Shown here: one piece after another, positions 25,531 through 42,262 of the stretch
Layout: the number at the start of each line of letters is the position of its first letter
Position numbering within the stretch: position 1 is the first letter of the stretch
Source: Rebecca billardiae RCC1528
Taxonomy: Eukaryota; Protista; Haptophyta
NCBI GenBank assembly: GCA_965240325.2
Contig: OZ251223.1
Coordinates: 4,092,001 to 4,156,000 of the forward strand
Length of the DNA stretch: 64,000 nucleotides
Direction of reading: 5' to 3'
Program-made: the position numbers and the translations under genes
Notes under the pieces: model-generated
What the model saw: the letters and a program-made list of their open reading frames with translations, nothing else
Told to the model about the DNA's origin: nothing
Database searches by the model: none

Positions 25531-26937
25531 TCAAGCCACCCCGACGAGCGAGCGCGCGACGAGGAAGCCCGCGCCGAGCAGCCACGCCCAGAGCGTGCCC
25601 GCCAGGATGAGCGGCTTGGGCCCGAGCTTCTTCATCTCGGACGCGCGCGTGTCCACGCCCAGCGCAGCCATCGCGCACGCGAGCATGTACGCGGACGTCG
25701 TGCTCGCGGCCTTCACCACCGGCGGGGGCAGCGTCACCATCGAGTTGGCCGCCGCGACGGCGACGAACGCGAACGCGAACCAGGGGACGGGCGCCTTGGC
25801 GATCGGGCCTGAGGTCGCGGCCGCCATCGGCGCGCCCGCGCCGGCCGACGGCGCCGCGGGCGACGAGGCGGACACGGTGGTGGCGCCGTCGACGCCGGCG
25901 CCATCGTGGTCGGCGTGGGCCTTGGCGAGCTTGCGGGCGCGCCGGTTGAAGCGCCAGATGCGGATGGTGGACAGCGCCGTGAGCGCGGGCGCGAGGAGCA
26001 TCACGCGCGCCAGCTTGGTGACCACCGCGGTCGTCGCAATCTCGGGCGTCATCGCGTTGCCCGCCGCGACCACGCCGGCGACCTCGTGGATCGTGCTCCC
26101 CGTGTACACGCCCATGAGCTTGGCCGACGCGCCGAGGCACGGGACGATGCGCCAGAGCAGCGGGTACAGGAACATCGACACCGAGCCGCAGAGCACGACC
26201 GTGCCGACCGCCGCGCTCACCTGGTGAGACTCGCCGCCCACGACCGGCTGCGCCGCGAGCACCGCCGAGCAGCCGCAGATCGCGGCGCCGGACGAGATGA
26301 GCATCGAGAGCGAGTCGTCCATGCGGAGCACGCGGCCGCCGAGGTACGCGCCCAGGAGGAGCGTGGAGACCACGACGAAGACGTCGCACACGATGCCCGC
26401 CGCTCCGATCGCGCTGATCTGCTGCAGCGTGAGCTTGAGCCCGTACAGGATGATGCCCGCGCGCAGCAGCCGCGCCTTGCTGAACTTGATGCCGGGCGAG
26501 AGGAGGGAGCGCGCGCGCTCCGGCATGGTGTTGCCCACGACCATGCCGAGCACGGTGGCCCAGAGCAAGGGCGAGAGGTGGCCGGCGAGGAGGTTCTTGC
26601 TCAGGTAGACGGAGCTCGATGCGACGACCGCCGTGAGGGCCACGCCGGGGGCGCGCTCGGCGGCGAAGCGCGCGGCCGACGGGAACTGGCCCGTGTCCGC
26701 CTGCTTCGCCACCTGCGTCCGCGGCGCGATCGTCAGCTCCACCACGGGGTGCCGCGCCTTAAGCGCCGGACGACGCGCGAGCGAGGCCGGCTCCAGCACC
26801 GCCGCGAGCAGGGGCGGGGTCTTGCGCTCGAAAGCGAGTACGCCGGCGGGGGCGGCCACGAGTGTCAGCAGGGTAGACGCGACCAGGCGATACCGTGACG
26901 ATGTTGTGCGACCACATCCCGTCCCCGCTTTGGCCAT
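25531..26937 (-). CDS. YeiH/UPF0324 (putative sulfate exporter, PSE) membrane transporter with signal + transit-like N-terminus
   Basis: LSPLLWATVLGMVVGN, GIKFSKARLLRAGIILYGLKL, LISSGAAICGCSAVLA, GVYTGSTIHEVAGVVAAG, VVTKLARVMLL, VPWFAFAF, MAALGV. ATG at 26937. Confidence 0.92.
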   Translation of the reverse strand: MAKAGTGCGRTTSSRYRLVASTLLTLVAAPAGVLAFERKTPPLLAAVLEPASLARRPALKARHPVVELTIAPRTQVAKQADTGQFPSAARFAAERAPGVALTAVVASSSVYLSKNLLAGHLSPLLWATVLGMVVGNTMPERARSLLSPGIKFSKARLLRAGIILYGLKLTLQQISAIGAAGIVCDVFVVVSTLLLGAYLGGRVLRMDDSLSMLISSGAAICGCSAVLAAQPVVGGESHQVSAAVGTVVLCGSVSMFLYPLLWRIVPCLGASAKLMGVYTGSTIHEVAGVVAAGNAMTPEIATTAVVTKLARVMLLAPALTALSTIRIWRFNRRARKLAKAHADHDGAGVDGATTVSASSPAAPSAGAGAPMAAATSGPIAKAPVPWFAFAFVAVAAANSMVTLPPPVVKAASTTSAYMLACAMAALGVDTRASEMKKLGPKPLILAGTLWAWLLGAGFLVARSLVGVA

Positions 26938-27505
26938 TCGGCGGCGGAGCTGGGCACGCGGACAAAGGGACCGTGCCGGTGTCGAAATGTGGCCGACCGA
27001 CAGTCGCGCCAACTGGCGAGCGAGCGACGCGCGGCGCAGCCTGGCGCGCGGCGTGAGTACCGTAAATTTTCGCGGTGGCCGCGTCGCCCGGGTTTTACTA
27101 CTCGACGAAACTGGTCTACTAATCAAGAAAAGCGAGTACCACCAACACTACTGATCCGATCATAGTCACGTCATGTGACGAGCTATTACAAATTCGGTAT
27201 CGTCGCACACAATTGGGATCCGTCAGGATGTAAGGCGAGATAGTCGTTAGAGCCTGATTATGGTCACTTCGCGGAAAACATCATAAATCGGATCCATTCA
27301 TCCATACATAGTCATTTCTGTTCGGTTGGTTCGATGAGTCCCAACCGGTATTACCGAAACTTCAGCAGATCGACGTTTTTTCGACAAGCGTTCCAGCAAA
27401 GGTGAAGACCGCGAGTCCCGCGTCCGCGACATCGTCACGTGTCACGTGACACGTCCATCCCTCCAACATGAACTGCTTAGAAGACTACTACTTGAAGGGC
27501 GGTAA

Positions 27506-30500
27506 CTAGTCATTACCGCCGTCGCTCGCGCCGGACGCCGTGCCCGTGGCGGCGGCATCGCCGGCATCCGTCGCGACGAGTCGCGGGACGAACTTGCTCA
27601 GGTGCAGCTCGACGAGCTCGCGGAGTTCGGGCCACTCGTCGGCGGCGAACTTGGGCGGCGGCTCGGTGCAGCCGCGGTAGCCCTCGATGCACGCGGCGAT
27701 GCGCTCGATGCGCGCCTTGGACGCGGCCCCCTTGCCGCTGGGCGTCATGGTGCGCAGGTGCCCCTTGATCCCGTGCAGCGCGGGCCACACGCGCGACCAC
27801 GTGTCGCGCTGCTTCGAGAGCCGGTCGACGGTCTGCACGAGCTCGAGCGCCTCCTGCGCCAGCGCCACGTCGATCTCCTCCACTCCCACCGCGTCCCGAT
27901 CCACCGACGCGTGCGACGGCGGGCCGAAGCGCTGCAGCCACAGCGGCGCAAAGCGCTCGAGCACCTTGGCCTGTTCGAACGCCTCCTTGGGCACGACGCC
28001 GTGCGCGCGCGACTTGTACATGTCGACGTCGCTCGGCGAGTCGTTCGCCGAGCGCACGACGGAGAGCAGGCGCGCCTCGTCCTCGGCGCTGAGCGCCGCG
28101 CGCGCGCGTTGCAGCTGCAGCGTGCCCGAGATCGTGCTCGACTGGTCGAGCCGCTCGAGGTTCTCGTCGACGACGGCGAGCACCTGCGCGTGCGGGTGCT
28201 GCCGCATCAGCGCGAGGAGGTAGTCGGCGAAGCCCTCCATCTCCGCGTCGGCCGCGCCGAGGACGACGATCCGCTCGGGCGCGAAGCCCAGCGTCAGCAG
28301 CGTCTTGTGTATCAGCATGCGCTGCACCTTGGAGTCGTCCACCGCGATCGCGCGCGCGGTGCGCGGCACGAGGAACTGCTCGACCTGCTCGGACGTCACG
28401 TGGATCTCCGCCGGGCAGCGCAGCTCAAACACGGTGCGGCGCGGCTCGAACGAGATCGAGCAGGCGCCGCCGAGCGCCTCGGCGCACTTGTGCATCACCC
28501 ACCCGCCGTCGCCCGCCGAGAGCCCCGCGGCGGCGCCGCTCTCGGCCCCGCCGTCGCCGTCGTGCGCCTCCGCGTGCATGCGCACGCCCTTCTCAAAGAC
28601 GGCGGTCGGGTCGTCGACAGCCAGCAGCCGCTCGTGCCCCGGGCCGGGCGCGTTCGTCACGCGGACGGTGAGCGTGGTGCCGTCGTGCTCGAGCTCGGTG
28701 CGCACGGGCTCGCCTCTCGCGCCGTACTTGCACGCGTTCGACACCGCGTTGCGGTACACGAGCTGCAGCAGCCCCGGGTCGAGCGAGAGGGCGGGGAAGG
28801 GCGACGGCCTGCACTTGCGCGGGAAGCGGCGCGTGCTGCCGGGCGCGACCACGAGCAGCTCGTCCAGCCTCAGCGCCTCGTGGCGCGCGGCGTACGAGCC
28901 GTGGACGACGTCGCGCGCCATGGCCTGCGCGAGCACGACGTCGAGCGTCGACTTGAGCGTCGAGCCCAGGTCCTTCACGCGCCGCTGGAACGAGAGGTCG
29001 TACTCGGTGTTGACGATCGCGCCCGAGGTGACGCCCGACTCGTGCATCTCGCGCAGCCCGTCGCACGAGCCCAGCGCGACCAGCATCCCGTTCTTCACCT
29101 CGTGGCGCGTGAAGCGGTTGGTCTCCTCGTCCTTCTGCCGCGCGACGGCCTCGGCGATCAGCTTCTTCTCCGCCTGCTCGGCGACCAGCTGCATCTCTGC
29201 CTCGTGCCGCCGGAGCCGCTCGGTGACGTCGCGCACAAAGATGATGAGCGCCGCGTTGTCCGCGAGCGCGCCCACGTGCGCCTCGAACGCGCGCGGCAGG
29301 CCGTCCGGGCCGGGCACGTGCCACTCCTGCGTGCGCACGACGGCGCCGCCGCCCTGCTCGCAGCCCGCAAGCGCGCTGCGCCACGAGCGCTCGACGATGC
29401 CCTCAAGGTCCAGCTGGTCGGCGGTGCAGACGCCGCGTGCGCCCGGGTCGGCGGCGGCCGGCGCCGACGCGGGCGCCGACGCGGGCGCGTCGGCCGCGCG
29501 CAGGTCGACCGTGTGGATGGCGCCGTGGCAGAAGCGCTCGGCGTCATCGGCCTTCCCGCCGAGGAGCGCGCGCAGGCCCGCCGACGCGACCGTCTCGACG
29601 GTGATCGCCCGCGGCGACGCGCCCTCCGCCCCAGCCGCGGCCCCGCCACGGCCCGCGCCCTGCAGCGCGACCGGCGTGATCGGCGTCGAGATCACAATCA
29701 CGTCGGTCGTGCGCCGCCAGACCACGCCCATCTGCTGCACGAACCACTTGACCTCGTCGTCCATGTAGCGGTCGGGCACGGCCTCGGCGAGCTTCGAGAT
29801 GATGCTCGCGTACACCAGCTTGGCCAGCACGTCGGTGAACGCCTCGATCGCGAAGGGCAGGTAGTGCATGTGCTCGGAGAAGGCGGCCAGCGTGTTGAAG
29901 CGCACGTGCGCGATCTCCGCAAAGTAGACGACGACGAACCAGCTCCACATCACGCTGCAGCAGAGCATGAGCTGGAAGGCGACGCGCGTGCGGCGCGCCG
30001 TCTCGCGCACGCGCGGCGTGAGCCCCGGCGCGTCCTCCCGCGGCTGCGCCCTCGCGTCGCGCCACTTGGCCGCGAGCCGCTGGAAGATGATTGCGTACGT
30101 GCCGAACGAGAAGGCCATCACGCTCCACCAGCCGAGGAGGGTGCGCATGTACGGCAGCACGAGGCCGCACGCGGTGGAGGCGCTGATCGAGCTCGCGAAG
30201 AGCCACGCCCACTTGAGCTTCCGCTGGTTGATCGACTCGATCATGAAGGACATGCAGAAGGAGAGCACGACCCACTCGCACCTGCGCCGCCCGGCGCGTC
30301 GCGCGCGCCGGAGGCGGAGCGGGGCAAGGGGCAGCTGAGCGCGCGGCGCGGCGCGCGCGGGCGGCGCGTGGCCCGAGCGCACGCTCGCACGCACCAGCGC
30401 ACGAGGTGCACGCGGCACTGCGTGAAGTGGTCGACGACGACCGGCGAGGGGAATGTGCCAAGGATCCAGTTGGTGACCGTCGAGACGGCGGTCACGCTAT

Positions 30501-30813
30501 ACGCGACGATGGTGACGCCCTGCGCCGTCCGCCGCGCGGGCGTGCCGACCAGGGCCACGCGCGTCACCAGCGCCGCCGCGGTCACCGTCGCCGCCGTCAG
30601 CGCGGCGTCCTGCTCGCGCTTGTGCAGCTCGAGCAGGCTGCCGCGCTCGAGTGTGAAGACGCCGACCATCAGCGTGATGTACGCGCACCACATGCCCACG
30701 ACGACCGCGCGCGCCTTCTTGCGCTCGTCGAGCGGCGAGGTGCCGACCGGTTCGCCAAGCGAAATTGAGTCCGGCGCCGCGCGCGCGCTGCCCGCGTGCA
30801 CCGCGCTCGTCAT
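27506..30813 (-). CDS. Histidine-kinase rhodopsin-like protein: 8-TM opsin, PAS-like, HisKA, HATPase, receiver and HPt; 2 exons, about 1064 aa
   Basis: Intron 30282-30394 (GTGCG..GCAG) creates helix C HLVRWCEWVVLSF. Helix F VMWSWFVVVY; helix G FTDVLAKLVY (DxxxK). H-box FTRHEVKNG; N-box NAVSNACKYG; G2 SAGDGGW. REC: AVDDSKVQR..VVDENL..SAND..PK. HPt: LHGIKG. Confidence 0.88.
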
Positions 30814-31263
30814 CGTCGCGTGGATCGATTTAGATTTACCCAAGTCTCGGCTACTGTACGCTTCGACGCGATGCCGCCGGGATGATTGCCGATGACAAAT
30901 GGTCGAAGCGGTGTATTGAGATTGACAGTTTTGTGCGGTTAAAAAGATGCTCCCCTTGTCTGAACCACCACCGCGCAAGATGAATATGAAGGCGCCGAGA
31001 TCCCAATTGTCATTATAATAAGTGACGACAGAGTCAAGGGTGGTGGTTGGTCGGGGGCTGGCCAGGGTAGGGCTGGAGGCTTCGGCCGCTCGCCAGCCTG
31101 ATCACCCGGAGCCCGTTATGAAGGGGAAGGGGAATTTTTAGTGCGGTATGATACCGTACTGGTTCATACGTACCGCTTCGACTGGTTGATTCTGGATTCA
31201 CCGGAGCGATGGCGGAAGAGTAAGACGGGCTGTCGGACGGCAGCCAAAGCGTCGGCGCTTTGG

Positions 31264-32983
31264 TCACCGGCTCATCAGCTGCGGCGCGCGGCGCGCGCCC
31301 GAGCTGGGCGCGGCGCCGTCGAGCGCGCGCCAGGCGGCGTCGATCCGCGCGCCGAGCGCGCGCAGCTCGGCGCGCATGGTGCGGCCGAGCTCGTCCACCT
31401 TGGCCTCGAGCCGCTCCTGCTCGCGCAGCTCGCCCACCGAGTCCGCCTCGAGCGCGCGCGCGCGGCGTATGGGGAAGAGGCCCACGTCGCGCGCGCGGAT
31501 CATGCGCAGCGCGTACGCCTCCTGCCCGTTGAGCAGCGTCGGGTCCTTGGACGTGACGAACATGATGTACAGCACGTACGCCCACATGTTGTGCTCGCCC
31601 TCGACGTGCTTGCCAAAGCCGGCCGCGCCGCTCGCGTCGAACTCCTCGCGCTCGAGGCCGCAGATGAAGCACGAGTTCTTGATCTCGTCCTCCTTCTTCG
31701 TGTTCGTCGCGCGCAGCTCCGAGAACGAGTCGATGATGATGCCGGACACGATCGCCGTCACGACGAGGATCACGATCACGTAGTAGGCGACGTTGAAGAA
31801 GAAGGCGGGGCCGGTGTGCGCGCCCGAGTACGCGTCCTCGCCCCACACCCAGATCGGCGCGACGCGGATGCCGTAGTCGAGGTGCAGCGCGTAGCACTCG
31901 AGCAGCGTGCCGCACGCCGGCCCCTCGTTCTCGAAGCCGTACTTGTCGTTGAACCCCCAGAAGCTCGCGACCGTGAAGAGCAGCACAGTCACGAGCGTGA
32001 GCACGACCACCGCGGCGAGCTGCCGCCAGTTGTGCACGACGGCGGTGGCGACGTAGTGGCACGTGCGCATGCGCGCGGGGAGCTCGAGCACGGTGAACGC
32101 GAGCAGCAGGTACGCCTGCAGCACCGTCGCCACCACGCTCAGCGCGAGGTAGCTCCCGTCCCACAGCAGGCGCACGTCGGTCGAGAGCTCGAGCAGCAGC
32201 TTGCGCACCGCGCCCGCGCGCACGAGCAGGCCGCGCGCGCCGCCCGCGCGGTACACGGCGGCGGAGGTGGACGCGACGAAGGTGGGCACGCACGCGAGCG
32301 TGGCGACGGCGAGGTGCGCGAGCGCCACGCCCCACACCGCGCCCTCCGCGCGCCCCGCCGCGTCGCGCAGCCGCGGCGCGTCCGCCGCCTCGTCGTGCAC
32401 GTAGTAGAGGATGGCGAGGCCGTTCAGGCACAGCGAGAGGCCGAGCGTCGCGTTGCGCGTGCCGCGCCGGTTGTCGATCAGGAAGAGCACGAGCTGCCCC
32501 GCGCGCCCGCGCGCGCGCGCCCAGCGGTGCAGCTCGTTCTGGTGGCGCAGCGCGACGATCAGCTCGTGCGCGCGCGCGTAGAAGGACTTGAGGCGCTCCT
32601 CGTCGTTGTCGCGCCGCACGTCGTACACGAGCGCCTCGCGCGCGGCGCGGAGGTCGGGGTGGCGCCAGAGCCGCGTCGACTCGCGCGGCATCGGGAAGTG
32701 CACCATCTCGATGCGCCGGTCGCGCACGATCTCGATCGAGAGGATCGACGACTGCACGAGCTCGGCGCGGCGCGGCAGCGCGAGCCACGCGCGCCACGCC
32801 GCGGTGAGCTGCCCGGCCTCGTCGTGCGGCAGCAGCAGCAGCGCGACGATCGCAAACTCGAGGGTGAGCTCGAGGTCGATCGGGGTGCCCGCCTCCGTGC
32901 CGCCCGCGCGGCCGCCGCCAGCGGCGGCGGCGGCGGCGGTGGGCGCGCCGCCCGAGCCGCCGGGGCCGCCGCCGCCGCCGCCC

Positions 32984-33024
<41 letters not shown>

Positions 33025-35358
33025 GCCGCCGCCGCCGCCCACGCCGCCACCGCCGCCCACGCCGCCTCCGCCGACGGGCGGGCCGTGCGCGTCGGCGTGC
33101 GCGGCCGCGGCCGCTTCCGCCTCGAGCGCCTCCACCGCCTCTCCGAGCGGCCAGAGCGGCGCGTCGAAGAGCTCGCGGCTGGCGACCGTGCCGACCGGCT
33201 GCTCGGCCACGAGGCCCACGCCCGCCGCGCGCTCTGCGCTGCGCAGCGCGGGCGCGCTCGAGCCACGGCGCAAGGCGAGCGACGCTCGCGAGCGAAGCGA
33301 TGCGCTGCTGCCGCCGCCGCCGCCGCCGCCGCGCGAGCCGTGCCGGCCGAGGGCGCCGGCCGAGCGCTCGCGATCACGCGCCGAGCCGGGCTTGGCGCCG
33401 GGCGGCGCGGCCGCGCGGCCCGGCGCGCTCGCGCCGCCCGCGCCCCCGCCCGCGCCGGGCGGCGTGGCGGCGTGCGCGGCCTGGTGCGCGCTGAGGTACG
33501 CACCCAGCGCGTCCTCCTCCGCGGGCGAGCGGCGCGGCAGCCGCGTGGTCGCCGCCTTGAGGTCGACGGCGAGCGCGCAGTGCCGCTCGAGCTGCTCCAC
33601 CAGCCTCACCTCGTCCAGCTGCTCGAGCACGTCGAGCGCCAGGTCGGAGCCGTCGCGCTGGCCCAGCAGGAGCTCCGAGAGGGCGGAGGCGATGGCGAGC
33701 TCGCACTGCGGCATCGCGCGGCAGCACAGCTCGCCCGCGAGCCGGCGCATCGCGTCGCCGCGGTCGGCGCCGAGCACGCGCTCTCGGAAGTGCGCCGCGC
33801 TGCCGGGCGGCGCGTCCTCGCGCGCCTCGACCAGCTCGGCGCGCTCGAGGAGGCGCGCGGTGCTGCCGAGCGGGTCGCGCGCACCCATCGTGTCGAGCTG
33901 GTCGGAGGAGAGCAGCAGCGTCGCGCCGATCAGCTCGAGCAGCGCGCCCACCGGCTCGATCACCTTGTGCCGCACGAGCGACGCCTGCGCCTGCTCGCAC
34001 GGCCCCTGGCAGAACTCGGACGCGGCGAAGAAGAACGCGGTGAGCAGGCGCAGGTCGCCGATCAGCCTCGCAAAGTAGGCGGGCGAGGCGACGCGGTGCC
34101 ACTCGACCGTGCGAGACGCGCGCACGCCGCCGCCGCCGCCGCCCGCCTCCGCGCCGTCCTCCCCGGCGAACGCGGGCATCGAGGCGTTGGAGGACGACCA
34201 CGGCACCCGCTCGAGCACCGACGCGGCCGTGCGCACAATCAGCAGCCCCACCTCGGCGATCAGGTCGACGGACTGCGAGTGGGCGCGCGCGGAGGCGGTG
34301 CCGCCCGCGTCCGCGCCGCCGATGCTGCTGCTGCCGCCGATGCCGCCGCCGATGCCGAGCGCGCCACCGCCGCCGCCGCCGCCGCCGCCGCCGTCGCCAA
34401 GCCCGCCCCCGCCGCCGCCGCCGCCGCCCGCGCCGCCGCCGCCGCCGTGCGCCTGCGCGCCGTCCCCGCCGCCGTCGCGCGCCGCGTGCCACTGCTGCCG
34501 CTGCAGGTAGCGCTGCACGGGCAGGTTGACGCCCTCGCACAGGAGCTGGAGGAAGTTGACGAGCATCGCGCAGAGCCGCACCTCGCGCGGCGCGGGGCCG
34601 CTCGCCGAGCGCGCGCCCGCGCTCGCCGCGAGCTCGGCGTACCGCCGCAGCAGCGCCTTGATCGATCGCAGCCAGTCGCGCGCGAACGTGCCCTCGCGCA
34701 CGGCGCGCCTGTGGTCGCGCACGAGGGACTCCTGCACCGCCGAGTTGCCGTCGTGCAGCAGCCGCGTGCCCAGCCGCGTGCCCTCCTCGATCAGCGAGCG
34801 CGTCGACTCGTACAGCTCGCCGAGCGCGCCCACGTGCACGCCCAGCGTCATCAGGTCGACGACGAGCCGCGAGACGCCGACCGCAGCCAAGGCCTTCTGG
34901 TAGCGGTCGAGCCACGCGATCTGGGCGGCCTTGGAGCGCGCCGCGCCGTGCGCGTCCGAGCCCTCCTCGACGGGCACCAGCGCCTGCAGCAGCTGCACCA
35001 CGCGCACGCCGAACGCCGCCTCCTCCGCGTCCGCGTGCAGCTCGGCCGCGCGAGAAGTCTGCCGCACCAGCCGCTCAAACAGCCGCGAGGCGCCGCGATA
35101 CGCCGCGCGGTCCGAGCGGTCCGCGCCCGTGGCGGGGGCGGCGGCCGTGGGGGCGGCGGCGGCGCCGAGGCCGAGGCCGGCGGCGGCGGCGGCGGGCGCG
35201 AGCGCGTCGTGCCCCGACGCGCCGGCCGAGAGCGCCAGCGGCCCGTCGGGCGCGGGCGCGACGCGCCGCGCGCCGCCGCCGCCGCCGCCGCCGGGCGCGT
35301 GCCGCGCGCACGGCGCGCACGGCACGCACAGCCAGCGCCGCGCGCACCCGCCCGCGGA

Positions 35359-35391
<33 letters not shown>

Positions 35392-37911
35392 GTCGTGCGC
35401 GCGCATCCGCCCGGGCCCCAGCCCCGCCGCGGCGTGCGCCCGCGCCTGCGACGCCCGGCGCCACTCCTGCTCCGCCCCGAACGCCACCATCCTGTCCAGC
35501 TCCCTCCGGAAGAGGCCGACCATCTCGGAGAACTCGTCGTCGTAGTCGGGCGCGGAGGAGGCGTGCGTGGGCGCGAGGAGGGAGGCGGCGGCGGCGGCGG
35601 CGTCGGGCTCGGCGGCGTCGGGCGCGGGGCCCTCCGCCCACGCGGGCGGTAGCGCCGCCCGCCCCTCCGCCGCCCCGCTCAGCGTCGCCTCCTTGGCGCT
35701 CAGCTGGTCGAGGCGGCGCGCGAACCGCGCGAGCGCAGCGCCGAGGCCGCCGCCGCCGTCCGCGTCCGCAGCCGCAGAGGTGGCGGGCGCGGACGCGCCG
35801 GGCGGCGCGGACGCGTCGTCCACGCCGTGCGCGCGCGCGCGCCGCGCCGCCCACAGCTCGTCCGCGTGCCGCGCCTCGCCCTGCACCGTGCCCAGCTCGC
35901 CGAGCGCGCGCACGGCGCCGCCGAGCGCGTCCGCGCCGCCGCCCGCGCCGCCGCCCGGCTCGGCGTGCTGCGCGTGCCTAGGCTGCGCGTGCGCGTGCGC
36001 GACACCGCGCGCGACGAGTGCGTCGAGCAGCGCGCGGCGCACGGCGGAGCCGCCGGCCCAGCGCGTGGTCGAGCCGACGGCGGCGGCGGCGAACGCGACG
36101 AGCGGGCCGTCCACCAGCGCGGCGCGCGCCCTCGCCCCCTCGCCGCCCTGCCCCGCGCGCGCGGCGCGCGTGTCGGCGTCGGCGAGCCGCGCGCCGCTTG
36201 CTAGCAGCGCCAGCATGAGAGGGGCGAGCGAGTCGGCGAGCTCGTGCGTGCGCGCTTCGAGGCGGGAGGCGAGGAGGGCGAGCGAGGCGGAGGCGTGCGC
36301 GCACAGCTCCTCGCCCTCGCCCGCCGCGCCCGCCGCCGCGCCCTCCGCGCGCGCCGCCAGCGCGCCCACCGCCTCCGCGCCCAGCCGCAGCAGCAGCGCG
36401 CTCGGCAGCAGCGCTCGCAACGGGCCGTGGATGGCTGAGCGCGCGTGCCCGAGGCCGCAGTCGGCGTAGAGCTGCAGCAGCGCGAGGTGCGCGGCGCGCT
36501 CGGCGGGCGGGGTGCGCGCGCGCACGCCCGCCCACGAGTACGGCTCCGCGCCGCCGCCGCCCTCCGTGTTGTTGTGCGCGCCGCCCAGCCCGGCGTGCGG
36601 CAGTAGCCCGCCGCGCAGCCGCGCGCGCACGCAGCGCGCGTGCGCGTCGCGCACCTCCTTGAAGACGAGGACCTGGTTGGGCGCGGCGGGGGCGCCGGCC
36701 TGCACGCACAGCGCGGAGAGGAGGCGCGCGCACGCCGCGCCGTACGCCCAGCCCGACGCGTCCGCGCCCGCGCCGCCCTCGCCCCGCGCCGCGCGGCCGC
36801 GCGCGAGCGCCGCCAGCTGCGCCACCGCCCACGGCGCCACCGAGCCCGCGTCGCGCGCGGCCGCGCTCGCGTTGTCTGCGTAGCAGCGGCCGAGGCAGCG
36901 CACGGCGGCGAGCGAGCCGAACGCGGCGGCGTGCGCGCGCATCGCGCAGTGGCGCAGCACCGCCGCCTGCGCCTCGCCGTCCCCCTCCGCCAGCTCCGCC
37001 AGGAACGCGTACACCGCCTCGACGATGGCGCCCGCCTCGGCGACGCGGGCCGCGCGCTCGCGCGACGCGGCCGCGCCGTCGGCCGCCGCCGCGCGCCCGC
37101 GGCCGCTGCGGCCGCGGCTGAGGTCGCGGCTGCGCTCGCGCGCGGCGGCGGAGCGCGCGGGCGGCTCGGCCTCTGCCTCGCCGCCGAGCGTGCCTCTCGC
37201 CTCCTCCGCCGCCTCCGGCGCGTCCTCCTCCGCCGCCGCCGCCGCGCCCGCCTCGCCGCCGCCGCCGCCGCCGTGCGCCGCGCCGCCACCGCCTGGCGCC
37301 GCCGCGTCCGCCGCCAGCCTCGCGAGCAGCTCGCCGAGCACCTGTGCGCAGCGGTAGTGCGCAAAGATGCGCCGCGCGATGCGCGCGCGCGCGGCCGAGG
37401 AGCCCGACGCGCGCGCGAGCGCCGCGCTGCACGCGTCCAGCGCGCCCAGCACGTCCGCCGCCGCCAGCGCGCTCGGGCCGCGCAGGCCCTCCAGGCCCGC
37501 GACGCGCAGCGCGCCGCGCCCGAGCTCGCGCGCGGCCGTCTCGAAGACCGTCACGTCGAGCGGGTGCGCGAGGAGGGTGACGGAGGCGGCGGCCTCGGCG
37601 AGGTAGCGCCGCGACGAGTGCAGCTCGCACAGCGTGTCCAGCGCCTCGTCCACCAGCGTCGGCGCCTCGGCGGCGATCGAGCGCAGCAGCAGCGGCCCGA
37701 GCGCGCGCCGCCACTCGGCGGCCGGGCCGAGCACTGCGCGCAGCTTGGCGCGCACGCGGCCGCACGCGTCCGCGGGCGGCGGCGGTGCGGAGGCGGGGGC
37801 GAGGCCGAGCACCGCCGCCTCCTCGAGCAGCGCGGGCTGCTCCGCGCCCACGCCGCCCGAGCCGCCCGAGCCGCTGCCGCCGCTCTGCACGCGCGCGGCC
37901 GCCGCCGCCGC

Positions 37912-37947
<36 letters not shown>

Positions 37948-40573
37948 CGAAGCCGCCGCCGCCGCCGCGGCCGCGGCGTTGTGCAGCCTGTAAAAGTAGT
38001 GCAGCAGGTCGGAGAGCTGGCGCTGGAGGCGCACGGAGCAGAACAGCTTGAGCGCGCGGATCGCCGCCGTCTGCACCTCGTCCGCCAGCCGCTCCGCCGC
38101 CGTGCGCGCAGCCAACCTGTCGTTCAGGACAGTGCTCTTGGCGTTGAGCCGCGAGGGCACGTGCGTGCGGTCGAGCGGCACGCTGAGGCGGCGGAGGAGC
38201 GCGGTGAGCCGCTGCTGCACGAGCTCCTCCGACGCGGCCGAGTCGAAGAAGCCGACGGAGGCGAGCGAGCGCGCGAGCTGCACCGTCGCCAGGGCATACC
38301 CGAGCGCGCCCTCGCGCGCGCGCGCAGAGCGCGGCGCGCGCGCGCCCGCGCGGCCCGCGCCGCCGCGCCGCGCGCGCGCGCCGCCGGGCGAGGGCGGCAC
38401 CGCCGCCTTTGCGCCGCCGCCGCCGAGCCGGAGGCCGCCGGCGAGCGCGCCGGCGACGGCCTCGGCGACGCTCGACGCGTCGGTCGCGAGCGCGCCCAGC
38501 CCCGTCTCGGCGCGCGCGAGCGGCCGCGCGCCCGCGGCCGAGCGCCGGTCGGCGCGGCCGCCGCCGCCGCCGTCGGCGAGCGCGCGCGCCGCGCCCGCGC
38601 CGCCGGCGTCGGCGGCGTCGGCGGCCGCCGCGGCGCGCGCGTCGTCGAGCGCGCTCGCGAGCCACGCCATCACGCGCTGCTGCTGCGCCGCGAGGTCCGC
38701 GCCGCCCGCGCCGCACCCGTCGCCGAACGGCCGCCACGCGCGCGCCTCCGGCGGCTCCGAAGCGCCGCCCTCGCCCTCCCACCGCCGCGTGAGCGTGACG
38801 AGGGCGTCCGCGTTGCGCGCGGCGGCCGCGTGCGCGTGCACGTCGGCGCCGACGGCGTAGCACGCGCCCAGCAGGCGCACGTACGCGGCGAGCACGTCCG
38901 CGGGCACGCCGTCGGCGCGGCCGCCGTCGTCGGCGCGCCCGCCCCCTCCCTCCGCCTCCGAACCGTGGCCGTCCGCGCCGCCGCCCTCCGCCGCCTCCAG
39001 CACGCCGAGGATGTGCTCGATCGACGCGTGCGCGCGCACCAAGCGCAGCCCGGCCTCGTTGCCGCCCGCGCACGCGCGCGCCAGCAGGTTGAGCGACTCG
39101 AGGTGGAAGCCGCACGCGTCGTACAGCGCGAGGGTGCCGGCGGGCGGCGCGTGCGCGAGCACGGCGCGCGCGCGCGCGGCGTAGAGCGATCGCACAGAGA
39201 GCCACGTGCCGCCGTCCGCGCCGCCGCCGCCGGCGTCGTCGCCGCCGCCGCCGCCGCCGTCCGCGCGCGCGCCGAGCAGCTCGGCCGCGGCGCGCGCCGC
39301 CGCCGCTGGCACGCAGATCTGAGGCTCGCCCTCCGAGCCGCCGCCCGCCGCCTCGGCGCGCTGCGGCGCGCAGCGCAGCGGCAGCAGCGTGCGCCGCCGC
39401 GCGAGCGACGCCGCCACCCACGCCTGGATGGACGGCACGGGCTGCTCGAAGCACACGCAGATCGAGGTGAGGAAGGAGAGGTGCCGCGCGGAGAGGAGCG
39501 GCCTCGCGGGGCGCACGATCGCGTCGATCACCGAGCGGTCGAGCCTCGTCGTGAGGAAGGCGTTGTCATCAAACAGCGCTGAGAGCACCGCCTCCGAGCC
39601 CCAGTTGAGCCCGAGCATCGAGATCAGCGTCTCGATCAGCTCGTCGAAGTGGCCGTCGCCGTCGCGGTCGCGCGGCAGCGTGCTCTGCGCCGCGCGCAGG
39701 AAGTAGCGCTGGTTGCAGTCGTGCTTCTCGAAGATCGCCGCCAGCAGCTCGAACGCGCCGCAGCCGAGCGCGGCGCCGGCATCGTACGCGGCTTGGTGCG
39801 GGTGGCGCGCGGCGCCGCGCGCGGAGGGCGCGGCGGAGGGCGCGGCGGCCGCGCGGTCCGGCGCGCGAGCACGCGCATCCGCACCCGCGCCGCCGTCGCC
39901 GCCCGCGCCCCCTCCGTCCCCATCCGCCGCGTGCCCCTGCCCCTGCCCCCGCGGCTGCCCCTCCCCCGCGCCGGCCAGCCCGTCGTCCTCCTCCGTGCGC
40001 AGCCGCTCGCGCAGCAGCTGCCCGCTGTCAGGCCGCCAGCGCTGCTCGGGCGGGAGCGCGCTCTGCAGGTCGCGGAAGGCGGTGTGGATGAGGAGCCACA
40101 GCACGTCGATCAGGTGCGCGTCCCGGCACGCCGACTGCCGCGCGTGCACCGCGGGCGGCAGACTGCCCGGCGAGGCCGAGCCTGCGGCTGGGTGCGCGCC
40201 CGCCGCCGAGCCGGCCGCGCCGCCTCCGCCGCCGCCGCCGCCGCCGCCGCCGCCGACGTTGACAAAGTCTCGGAGCGCCTCGAGCGCGAGGAGCGCGCGC
40301 GAGAGCTCGGGCCCCTCGAGCCTCGCGCCCCTCGCCGCGCCCTCCACGCTCAGCGCGCCCGCGCCCAGCGCCCCTCCGAGCAGCGCCTCCAGCTCGGAGC
40401 GCAGGTCGAGCACGCGCAGCAGCGCGGCGCCCGCGCCCGCCGCCGCAGGCACGAGCTCGAACGCGTCCTGGTCGCGCCGGCGGGGCGCGGCGCGGAGGGC
40501 GTGTAGGGTGCCCGAGCTGCGCGCGCCCGCCGACGCCGCGATCGGGGCCTCGCCGAGGCCGCCCGCCTCCGCC

Positions 40574-40612
<39 letters not shown>

Positions 40613-40613
40613 T

Positions 40614-40644
<31 letters not shown>

Positions 40645-42081
40645 GGCGCGCGACGCGTCGACCGACTCGGCCGGCGGGTGGGGCAGCGGCAGGTGCACGA
40701 GCGGCGGGGCGTGGAGCGCGGCGTGCACACCCTCGCCCACCGCCGCCGCCGCCGCCGCCACGTGCAGCCAGCGCCCGCCCGACGCGGAGCAGAGCGCGGC
40801 GCACGCGCCGCCCGCCACCTGCTCGCGCTCGCTCGCCGCGGTCGGCGCCAACACGAGAAGGGTGCCCGACGCGTCGGCGAGCTCCGAGCCGGCGGGGGCG
40901 AAGAGCTCGTCGAGCGAGGGCCGCGCCAGCCCGACCGGTGCGTCGCCCCCCGAGCCGGCCCCCGCCGCGCCGCGCGCGCCCAGCCGCAGGTACTGCCCGG
41001 TGAGCACGGAGCGAAGCCGCACGCGCGAGCTACCCCAGCACACGGCGCCGCCGAGCGCGGGCGTGTGCTGCTCGAGCTGGTACAGCGCCTTCCACGCCTG
41101 CTTGCGCTTGCGCGGCTTGGCGGTGGTGCGCACCGAGACGCTCTGCGCCGCGCCGACGCCGACGCCCTCGCGCGCCGCGCCCGCGCCCTCGCCCTCGCCC
41201 TCGCCCTCGCGCCGCCGCGCCGCGCCCGCAGCCGGGTTGGCCGCGCGCAGCAGCGCCGTGTTCGGCTGCACGTCCACGCGGACGTAGCCCTGCTCCTGCC
41301 GGTGGTAGAGGAGGACCACGTCGCCCGCGTGCACGTGCCCGGGCTCGGGCCGCGCCGCGTACAGCTCGAGCCGCAGCCCGCTGCTGCGGAACGAGAGCGT
41401 GAGCTCGCGCGCGTCGCGAGCGTCGCGCGACTCGGCCGAGGACGCATGCGGCGCGCCGTCCGCCGCGCCCGCGCCGGCGGGCACGTGGAGGAACTGGTGC
41501 GACTGCACGTTGCCCAGCACCACGCCGTCGCCCACGTACACGTGCTCCCCCTCCGAGCGCACGCGGAACTGCGGGCTCAGCCGGAACAGCAGGTGCGAGC
41601 CGAGCTCGCGCATGTTGCCCGCCGCGAGCGTCGCCGCGGTCGTGCCGTACTCGCGCGAGCGCGCGCCGAGGTGGCCGACCGCGGAGACGAACATGCCGGT
41701 GGAGACGGAGCGGAGGCTCACCGTCGCGCCGTATGTGATGTGCTCGCCCGCCGAGACCGCCGGGCAGATCACCTGGAAGCAGCACCGCTGGTGGAACGAG
41801 CCGACGCGCGAGAGCGCCGCCTGCGCGCGCGTGAGCACGCCCAGCGTGAGCTCGTCCGCGGGCTCGCCGAAGCTGCGGATGCCGACGTAGCACGGCTCGC
41901 TCGGCTGCGCATCGCCGCCCTCCGACGCCACGGACAGCGTCACAATGTCGCCCGAGCGCAGCTGCAGCCGGCCGGCGTCGCTGCGGAACGGCGACGAGCC
42001 GAGCGCGCCGCTGCGCGCGCGCTCGAGCGGTGGCGGCGAGGGCATGGCCGGGCCCGAGTCGCCCGGTGACGGGGGCATCAT
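31264..42081 (-). CDS. IP3-receptor/ryanodine-receptor-like Ca2+-release channel (about 3600 aa, apparently intronless)
   Basis: N-terminal beta-trefoil/MIR motifs (CCFQV..ITYG..SLRSVSTGMF; FRLSPQFRVRSEGEHVYVGD..L; VRLRSVLTGQYL). RIH-associated FLQLLCEG..Q.YL and SEFCQGPC. SIEIVRD..MVHFP, six TM helices, GIIIDSFSELR, CFICGL..HVEGEHNMWAY. Confidence 0.9.
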
Positions 42082-42262
42082 GGTGGCCCGTGCGCCGGGC
42101 TGTCCCAACGGCACGGCAGCTCCGGCCGATGAGGTCCGTGCGCCCGCCCTTGCAACCGACAGGCGCGAGCAGGAGTGCCGGCTGAAGAGTGAAGACTGCT
42201 AGCTGCCCCTTAGTCTGTGATCTGTCTGAGCCGCCAAGCTGCGGCACCCGGGCGCATGCAAG

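Follow-up and report, generated by a model that had tools for sequence, protein, structure and literature searches.

The 64,000-nucleotide stretch of Rebecca billardiae RCC1528 DNA analyzed here (contig OZ251223.1, positions 4,092,001 to 4,156,000; hereafter the window) is very GC-rich, with a guanine-plus-cytosine content of 0.60–0.83, and contains on its minus strand two overlapping open reading frames (ORFs), 27506–30418 and 30241–30978, that are out of frame with each other. The question raised by this locus is whether the two ORFs are parts of one gene and, if they are, what kind of protein the gene encodes. A sequence-only reading of the window had proposed that splicing of an intron at 30282–30394 yields the eight hydrophobic helices of a microbial rhodopsin, followed in the same chain by a PAS-like segment, a histidine kinase, a receiver and a terminal histidine phosphotransfer (HPt) domain, with no cyclase. 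Our analysis suggests that the gene is likely to encode a membrane enzyme rhodopsin composed of an eight-helix opsin, a linker of ~200 residues, a divergent HisKA kinase (His533), a receiver (Asp845) and an HPt domain (His976). This complete one-chain architecture is supported in silico because the folds are recovered and because the Schiff-base lysine and the phospho-acceptors are conserved throughout the family.

The spliced coding sequence is 3195 nt long and runs without internal stop from the ATG at 30813 to the TAG at 27506, encoding 1064 amino acids, which reproduces the proposed joining of the two ORFs and the resulting eight hydrophobic helices. Exon 1 (30395–30813, minus strand, start codon 30813–30811) contains residues 1–139 and two bases of the codon for Trp140, and codes for the N-terminal tail, the transmembrane helix TM0, helices A and B, the B-C hairpin and the beginning of helix C. 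The intron (30282–30394, minus strand) is a 113-nt GT-AG intron of phase 2, GTGCGT...GCGCAG, that splits the RW|CEW motif of helix C. On the minus strand the donor junction 30395/30394 reads ...CGC TG|GTGCGTGCGAG and the acceptor junction 30282/30281 reads ...GGCGCAG|G TGC GAG TGG. Exon 2 (27506–30281, minus strand, stop codon TAG at 27508–27506) extends from the last base of residue 140 to residue 1064.

The choice of this intron can be assessed by enumerating all GT/GC-AG pairs within the ORF overlap that leave the frame open. Among the 53 such pairs, 30394/30282 alone produces RVHLVRWCEWVVLSF, which corresponds residue for residue and without insertion or deletion to transcript-derived relatives (RVHLLRWCEWTPLAG, RVFLVRWCEWIPTAG; RVHLLRWCEW, RVFLVRWCEW). 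The other pairs were ruled out, each of them deleting or inserting residues in the conserved helix C. Taken alone, the exon-1 ORF matches a hidden Markov model (HMM) of the family membrane domain that was built without exon 1 of the window (E 1.1e-17). The gene model of the related metagenomic locus L001 breaks at this very point, with ...FLARWC and ...CEWSALAF lying in different frames, from which we conclude that the position of the intron is conserved. On these grounds of homology, exon 1 is predicted to be joined to exon 2 by the 30394/30282 splice. Scans of the 64 kb with tblastn and HMMs found no paralogue within the window.

A separate observation concerns public annotation. The closest relative, P0001 (JGI metagenome 3300038657; L001:4300-5300), has a public gene model without the first opsin exon: the model begins inside the intron read-through, and the real exon 1 lies upstream in another frame, where it ends in the same ...FLARWC. 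The same error of a missing exon 1 probably affects other family members too.

The rhodopsin domain (29783–30717, minus strand, interrupted by the intron) covers residues ~33–306, as delimited from profile comparison, a homologue model and fold matches. Hydropathy places its hydrophobic segments at approximately residues 36–56, 70–93, 99–119, 135–156, 164–185, 187–207, 240–270 and 283–305, with RWCEW (139–143) in the fourth segment and DVLAK in the eighth. All landmarks named in the sequence-only reading (RWCEW, WWS, MWSWFV, DVLAK, FVRDVTER and LHGIKG) are present in the spliced protein, and at 29819–29821 (minus strand), where the retinal lysine codon had been placed, there is indeed an AAG, which encodes the predicted Schiff-base Lys294 in the DVLAK motif of helix G. 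In terms of bacteriorhodopsin positions, Arg139 corresponds to R82, Glu142 to D85, Trp143 to W86, Trp191 to W138, Trp252 to W182 and Asp290 to D212.

Conservation of these residues was evaluated in 175 aligned relatives. The K216 position is Lys in all non-gap sequences (158/158) and the R82 position is Arg in 166/167, while Glu occupies the D85 position in 157 of ~167 relatives. Trp is found at W86 in 152 relatives (Phe in 15), at W138 in 161 and at W182 in 166, and the D212 position holds a carboxylate in 150 sequences (Asp in 112, Glu in 38). Unlike in the pumps, the T89 position is Leu and D96 is either Leu or Met, while Y185 is occupied by Leu, Ile or Phe and P186 by Val. The natural reading of this residue pattern is that of a putative non-pumping, signalling rhodopsin.

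The structural comparisons lead in the same direction. A profile built from the membrane domains of nine family members was searched against the PDB, and the only significant match was the eight-helix rhodopsin phosphodiesterase (Rh-PDE) of Salpingoeca (7cj3, 7d7q; E 0.0028–0.0045), with ...rvhllrwcEw... aligned against ...PVWLMRYAEW..., a segment of Rh-PDE that we take to be its helix C with the Glu counter-ion. A structure model was built for a homologue that shares RWCEW and DVLAK (P0004:55-342), with the family alignment as input. The model has a mean predicted local distance difference test score (pLDDT) of 88.3 and a predicted template-modelling score of 0.88, and it contains eight helices with a hairpin before helix C; the eight hydrophobic segments of the window protein align to the sequence of this homologue. 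RWCEW starts helix C just after the hairpin, and the lysine of D-x3-K lies midway in the last helix, which agrees with the expectation of eight helices and a lysine placed in the interior of the last one. A Foldseek search of the model against the PDB returned microbial rhodopsins for all of the top 50 matches, with Rh-PDE first. Alignment with VIA-align gave Z 23.4 over 257 residues and all eight helices for Rh-PDE, and Z ~20.7 with a root-mean-square deviation (rmsd) of 2.6 over ~220 residues for bacteriorhodopsin and sensory rhodopsin II. The proposed microbial-rhodopsin identity is thus borne out by the profile match to Rh-PDE, by the fold of the homologue model and by the lysine kept in 158/158 relatives.

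A rhodopsin fold does not by itself imply light sensing, and the domain might bind no retinal, or might bind another ligand, with the kinase answering a membrane or chemical cue. Such a reading would fit a pocket that is unlike those of pumps and sensory rhodopsins, lacking the helix-F Pro and carrying Phe or Leu at Y185, and it would also fit the rarity of Pfam Bac_rhodopsin matches, which are found in 1/9 and 2/39 relatives (the latter being full-length), all below the usual confidence level. However, an invariant lysine that occurs alongside the Arg, the two carboxylates and the pair of pocket Trp residues is difficult to account for unless a Schiff-base chromophore is bound, and Rh-PDE, the nearest relative of known structure, has been proven to bind retinal and has a helix C of the RYAEW type. 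We consider an opsin that does not sense light unlikely, and continue with a retinal-binding light sensor as the preferred reading.

Between the opsin and the kinase lies a linker (29150–29770, minus strand, residues 311–517) that contains low-complexity inserts rich in Ala, Gly and Pro as well as conserved W, S, RD and E columns, and that ends in IIFVRDVTERLRRHEAE. The FVRDVTER motif on which the suggestion of a PAS-like segment was based is present, but the PAS nature of the segment is weakly supported: the Pfam PAS_4 match is below threshold (E 0.022) and confined to the last 46 residues of the linker. A search of the PDB with a linker profile gave a chance match only. The linker may be described as PAS-like with this weak support.

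The histidine-kinase core (28388–29149, minus strand, residues 518–771) is delimited by a HATPase_c match, by PDB kinase matches and by conserved boxes. HATPase_c (E 5e-6) is the sole Pfam domain above threshold in the window protein. The assignment to HisKA follows from the H-box RFTRHEVKNG, which contains His533 (codon 29102–29104) and fits the HisKA pattern H-E-x-[KR]-[NT]. The window protein also carries an N-box with Asn655, Asn683 at G1, an F-box and a G2-like GDGGW; in the kinases of the family a GDGxW box stands in place of GxGLG. His533 is kept in 102/105 relatives, the N-box Asn in 81/82 and the F-box Phe in 79/80. A family kinase profile searched against the PDB retrieved histidine kinases only (YycG, 9m08, QseC, ETR1, KdpD), and a phmmer search of the PDB with exon 2 gave no match.

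The residue at G1 deserves separate consideration. The Asp of the G1 box is replaced in the window protein by Asn683 (codon 28652–28654, minus strand), and 78/80 relatives have Asn as well. In the alignment with QseC the G1 register is shifted by one position; an Asn at the place of the G1 Asp is favoured by the register of the strand and by the alignments with YycG and 9m08, and 9m08 itself has Asn there. Judged from the alignments, nucleotide binding may be unusual, with the nucleotide preference in question. The kinase core could consequently be catalytically degenerate, the protein acting as a light-regulated phosphatase, a phosphate sink or a scaffold fed by another kinase. An invariant Asn683 aligned with the G1 Asp of YycG, a G2 box of the form GDGxW and HATPase_c scores barely above threshold would be expected from such a protein. 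In contrast, the H-box His, the N-box Asn and Lys, the F-box Phe and the G2 glycines are near-invariant, which argues for a working ATP site, and the Asn at the aligned position is shared by the solved kinase 9m08. We therefore regard a degenerate core as distinctly improbable and retain the reading of the core as a divergent, putatively active kinase.

The C-terminal part was modelled from the last 293 residues of the window protein itself, with the family alignment as input. The pLDDT of this model is 81 overall, with values above 90 for the greater part of the receiver, whereas the final 24 residues of the chain are disordered. The receiver (27920–28387, minus strand, residues 772–927), assigned from the model, its CheY fold and its conserved sites, superimposes on CheY with Z 15.0 and rmsd 2.1, a result obtained with the window's own sequence. 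Its characteristic residues are Asp788, Asp789, the phospho-acceptor position Asp845 (codon 28166–28168), Ser884 and Lys905, and this set (DD, D, S, K) is kept in 73–74 of 74–76 relatives.

The receiver is followed by an HPt-like four-helix bundle (27590–27883, minus strand, residues 940–1037), recognized from the helices of the model (model residues 169–191, 197–211, 220–236 and 245–266) and from matches to receiver-HPt folds. His976 (codon 27773–27775, model residue 205) is located in the LHGIKG motif on the second helix. When the receiver and the bundle were compared together with Swiss-Prot models, the best matches were the C-termini of RpfC, BvgS, SsrA, GacS, BarA, TorS, EvgS and ArcB, and they span query residues ~2–284 or 3–268, i.e., receiver plus bundle. 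Shape matches in the ESM-Atlas include clusters annotated with Response_reg and Hpt over residues 1–270 (template-modelling score, TM-score, 0.56–0.58). The HxxKG motif is conserved in the relatives (H 56/62, K 57/62, G 62/62). No match to the PDB was obtained with a receiver-plus-HPt profile even at E 10, and an HPt profile searched against a set of 5.8 billion proteins found unannotated short proteins and no named standalone HPt; these short proteins are probably fragments of the same family. On the basis of the model, we accept the bundle as a predicted HPt domain, in which His976 would be exposed. The protein ends 7 residues past the HPt match and therefore contains no cyclase. The HATPase, receiver and terminal HPt that had been read from the sequence were accordingly all recovered, by the HATPase_c match, the CheY superposition and the kinases of the receiver-HPt type as best matches.

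The bundle might still be a dimerization or regulatory tail; the receiver would then pass its phosphate to an independent HPt protein, the route suggested for the Rhod-HK histidine kinases of the Mamiellales. Four-helix bundles easily match one another, nine complete-looking relatives end after the receiver, and the Pfam Hpt model matches 2/7 relatives at E 0.0075 at best. However, the matches cover the receiver and the bundle together and are specifically kinases of the receiver-HPt type, and HxxKG is kept on the second helix in the proportions given above. A mere tail is very unlikely in our view, and we proceed with the bundle as an HPt domain.

Several points weigh against the proposed architecture as a whole. 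The splice is predicted from homology, and searches for sequencing runs, of RNA or of any kind, over a 1.2-kb piece and over the whole gene listed none. In the HMM comparison, the four models corresponding to the domains of the sequence-only reading found nothing in this protein: Bac_rhodopsin does not match the window pieces, and HisKA, Response_reg and Hpt do not match the window protein, Response_reg being absent also from 39 full-length relatives; the domains are backed instead by profile and fold comparisons and, in the case of HisKA, by the H-box. The opsin that was modelled is that of a homologue 30% identical to the window protein. The opsin itself is atypical, with Glu at D85, Leu or Met at T89 and D96, and neither the helix-F Pro nor an equivalent of Tyr185. 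To these points are added the Asn at G1 of the kinase, the moderate confidence of the HPt part of the model (pLDDT 66–85) and a weak protein-atlas feature search on the HPt part (score 0.55–0.60).

If the proposed architecture is correct, the protein would have TM0 and seven further helices, with both protein ends in the cytoplasm, and retinal would be bound at the predicted Lys294 with Glu142 and Asp290 as counter-ions. Isomerization of retinal would move helices F and G, and this movement would alter the linker and the DHp helices, changing the autophosphorylation of His533. Within the dimer, the phosphate would pass from His533 to Asp845 and from there to His976, and His976 would donate it to a separate response regulator, as in ArcB, BarA and BvgS. 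We infer the light regulation, the phosphotransfer and the separate response regulator.

Relatives were collected with a word-indexed search, which gave nine, and with an exhaustive profile search over representatives of clusters at 50% identity, by which the family comprises 449 representatives at E ≤0.001, 221 of them at ≤1e-30. Architectures were counted with home-made HMMs on the best 150 representatives. The commonest full-length form, with 46 of these 150, is the one found in the window, i.e., membrane domain, histidine kinase, receiver and HPt; another 16 have the membrane domain, the kinase and the receiver, and the rest consist of many fragments and a few proteins with other extensions. 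In nine complete-looking relatives the chain stops right after the receiver. All named members are diatoms (Skeletonema, Chaetoceros, Cylindrotheca and Corethron), where they are annotated as hypothetical or uncharacterized, and transcripts in the MMETSP collection show that relatives are expressed in diatoms. The AFDB clusters add A0A1Z5JZP0 (TM-score 0.94) and R1F5G8 (TM-score 0.82), which, judged from the pattern of the accessions, are presumably from Fistulifera and Emiliania, respectively. Among 39 full-length members, Pfam recognizes HATPase_c in 32 and Bac_rhodopsin in 2; no member gives a match to HisKA, Response_reg or Hpt. Because Pfam sees almost nothing but HATPase_c, domain-based surveys would be expected to overlook the family.

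A midpoint-rooted tree built from 47 full-length rows groups the window protein with two environmental sequences, outside a clade of 44 rows that contains all named diatom sequences. Proteins with HPt stand on either side of the deepest split, and a minimum of six changes is needed on this tree, a distribution consistent with an ancestral HPt that would have been followed by repeated loss or truncation. The window protein itself is absent from both protein collections searched; P0108, which also has 1064 amino acids, was considered as its possible counterpart and rejected on comparison.

Some relatives show arrangements of a different kind. P0068, P0107, P0137, P0140 and P0148 are opsin relatives with N- and C-terminal extensions of 280–660 residues in which the kinase, receiver and HPt HMMs find no match, and they may represent other outputs on the same opsin. 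P0154, P0165 and P0107 have two membrane-domain HMM matches per chain and could be tandem rhodopsins, like bestrhodopsins.

The gene is flanked on the same strand by two genes of other types. Upstream, an intron-free ORF of 3616 amino acids (31264–42114, minus strand) contains Ins145_P3_rec, RIH_assoc, a C-terminal Ion_trans pore and long Gly/Ala runs, domains of the IP3/ryanodine-receptor type; it may be by coincidence that a channel of the Ca2+-release type neighbours a photoreceptor kinase. Downstream, 25531–27126 (minus strand) encodes a membrane protein of 531 amino acids with a Cons_hypoth698 domain (YeiH/UPF0324; E 1e-79).

Aureochromes, cryptochromes and phytochromes are the photoreceptors known from diatoms, and diatom rhodopsins have been discussed as proton pumps. 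A single chain that turns light into a transferable phospho-His would, if the proposal is true, give mostly non-motile phytoplankton a retinal-based blue or green light input to two-component signalling. With 449 cluster representatives and diatom transcripts, the family suggests that a route of light signalling has gone unnoticed in major marine primary producers, and such a chain could also serve for optogenetic control of two-component outputs. Reviews from 2025–2026 recognize three enzyme-rhodopsin families only and place rhodopsin kinases in green algae only (PMC12558739, PMC13436692, PMC13150293). Domain-based surveys listed only two kinases in a pelagophyte and no stramenopile rhodopsin kinases (PMC6324907, PMC8017926), and transcripts of rhodopsin kinases were not detected in a survey of marine metatranscriptomes (PMC8017926); the family described here would account for part of this gap in stramenopile kinases. 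A 2026 census of rhodopsins contains 17 clusters of uncharacterized rhodopsins (PMC13739731), among which the family may be included. Our literature search found no protein combining rhodopsin, histidine kinase, receiver and HPt and no rhodopsin kinases of diatoms or other stramenopiles, with subscription journals outside its coverage, so that an earlier description is possible. We see an even prospect that the family constitutes a fourth class of enzyme rhodopsins, in which an eight-helix rhodopsin drives a tripartite His-Asp-His kinase, that it is widespread in diatoms and at least one other, very GC-rich algal lineage, and that it was missed because its modules escape domain models.

Rhodopsin kinases have been described in Chlamydomonas and Volvox, some of them with a cyclase, and in the Mamiellales (PMC12558739, PMC4343026, PMC12704426). 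These green-algal proteins (Chlamydomonas HKR1 and 2c-Cyclop, Mamiellales Rhod-HK/Ot-HKR), collectively the HKRs, share with the window protein an N-terminal rhodopsin, a histidine kinase and a receiver in one chain. The Rhod-HK of the Mamiellales, with the order Rhod-HisKA-HATPase-REC, is likewise devoid of a cyclase (PMC4343026, PMC12704426, PMC12558739) and has been proposed to act together with a distinct HPT protein (PMC4343026, PMC12704426) in a His-Asp-His-Asp relay. The claim of a different output architecture consequently holds in part: the absence of a cyclase is already known from Rhod-HK, whereas the HPt, which is a separate protein in the Mamiellales, is fused in the window protein, the family is non-green with diatoms as its named relatives, and its HisKA and receiver have diverged beyond what Pfam recognizes. 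The novelty lies in an HPt that is part of the chain, in a lineage outside the green algae and in modules that have all diverged strongly. The opsin fold is no closer to A0A1Y5I757 (E 1.7e-2), which we take from its accession to be the Rhod-HK of O. tauri, than to generic rhodopsins.

Rh-PDE of Salpingoeca rosetta (7cj3, 7d7q) and the RhoGC-RhoPDE group share with the window family the eight helices including TM0 and the Glu counter-ion in a helix C of the form R-[YW]-x-E-W; they differ in that the output here is a two-component kinase cassette and not a cyclic-nucleotide enzyme, and the identity is 11–15%. The family is distinct from the characterized HKRs, RhoGCs and RhoPDEs, the HKRs having been compared by fold and architecture.

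The tripartite (“unorthodox”) kinases ArcB, BarA, BvgS, EvgS, TorS and RpfC have the same order of histidine kinase, receiver and HPt in one chain. Their sensors, in contrast to the rhodopsin proposed here, are periplasmic, PAS or quinone-sensing, and no significant sequence similarity to them was found with the receiver-plus-HPt profile. Eukaryotic fusions of this order occur in Physarum, Albugo, Guillardia and Emiliania, with PAS sensors (PMC6324907). The window protein may work like an HKR joined to a relay of the ArcB type.

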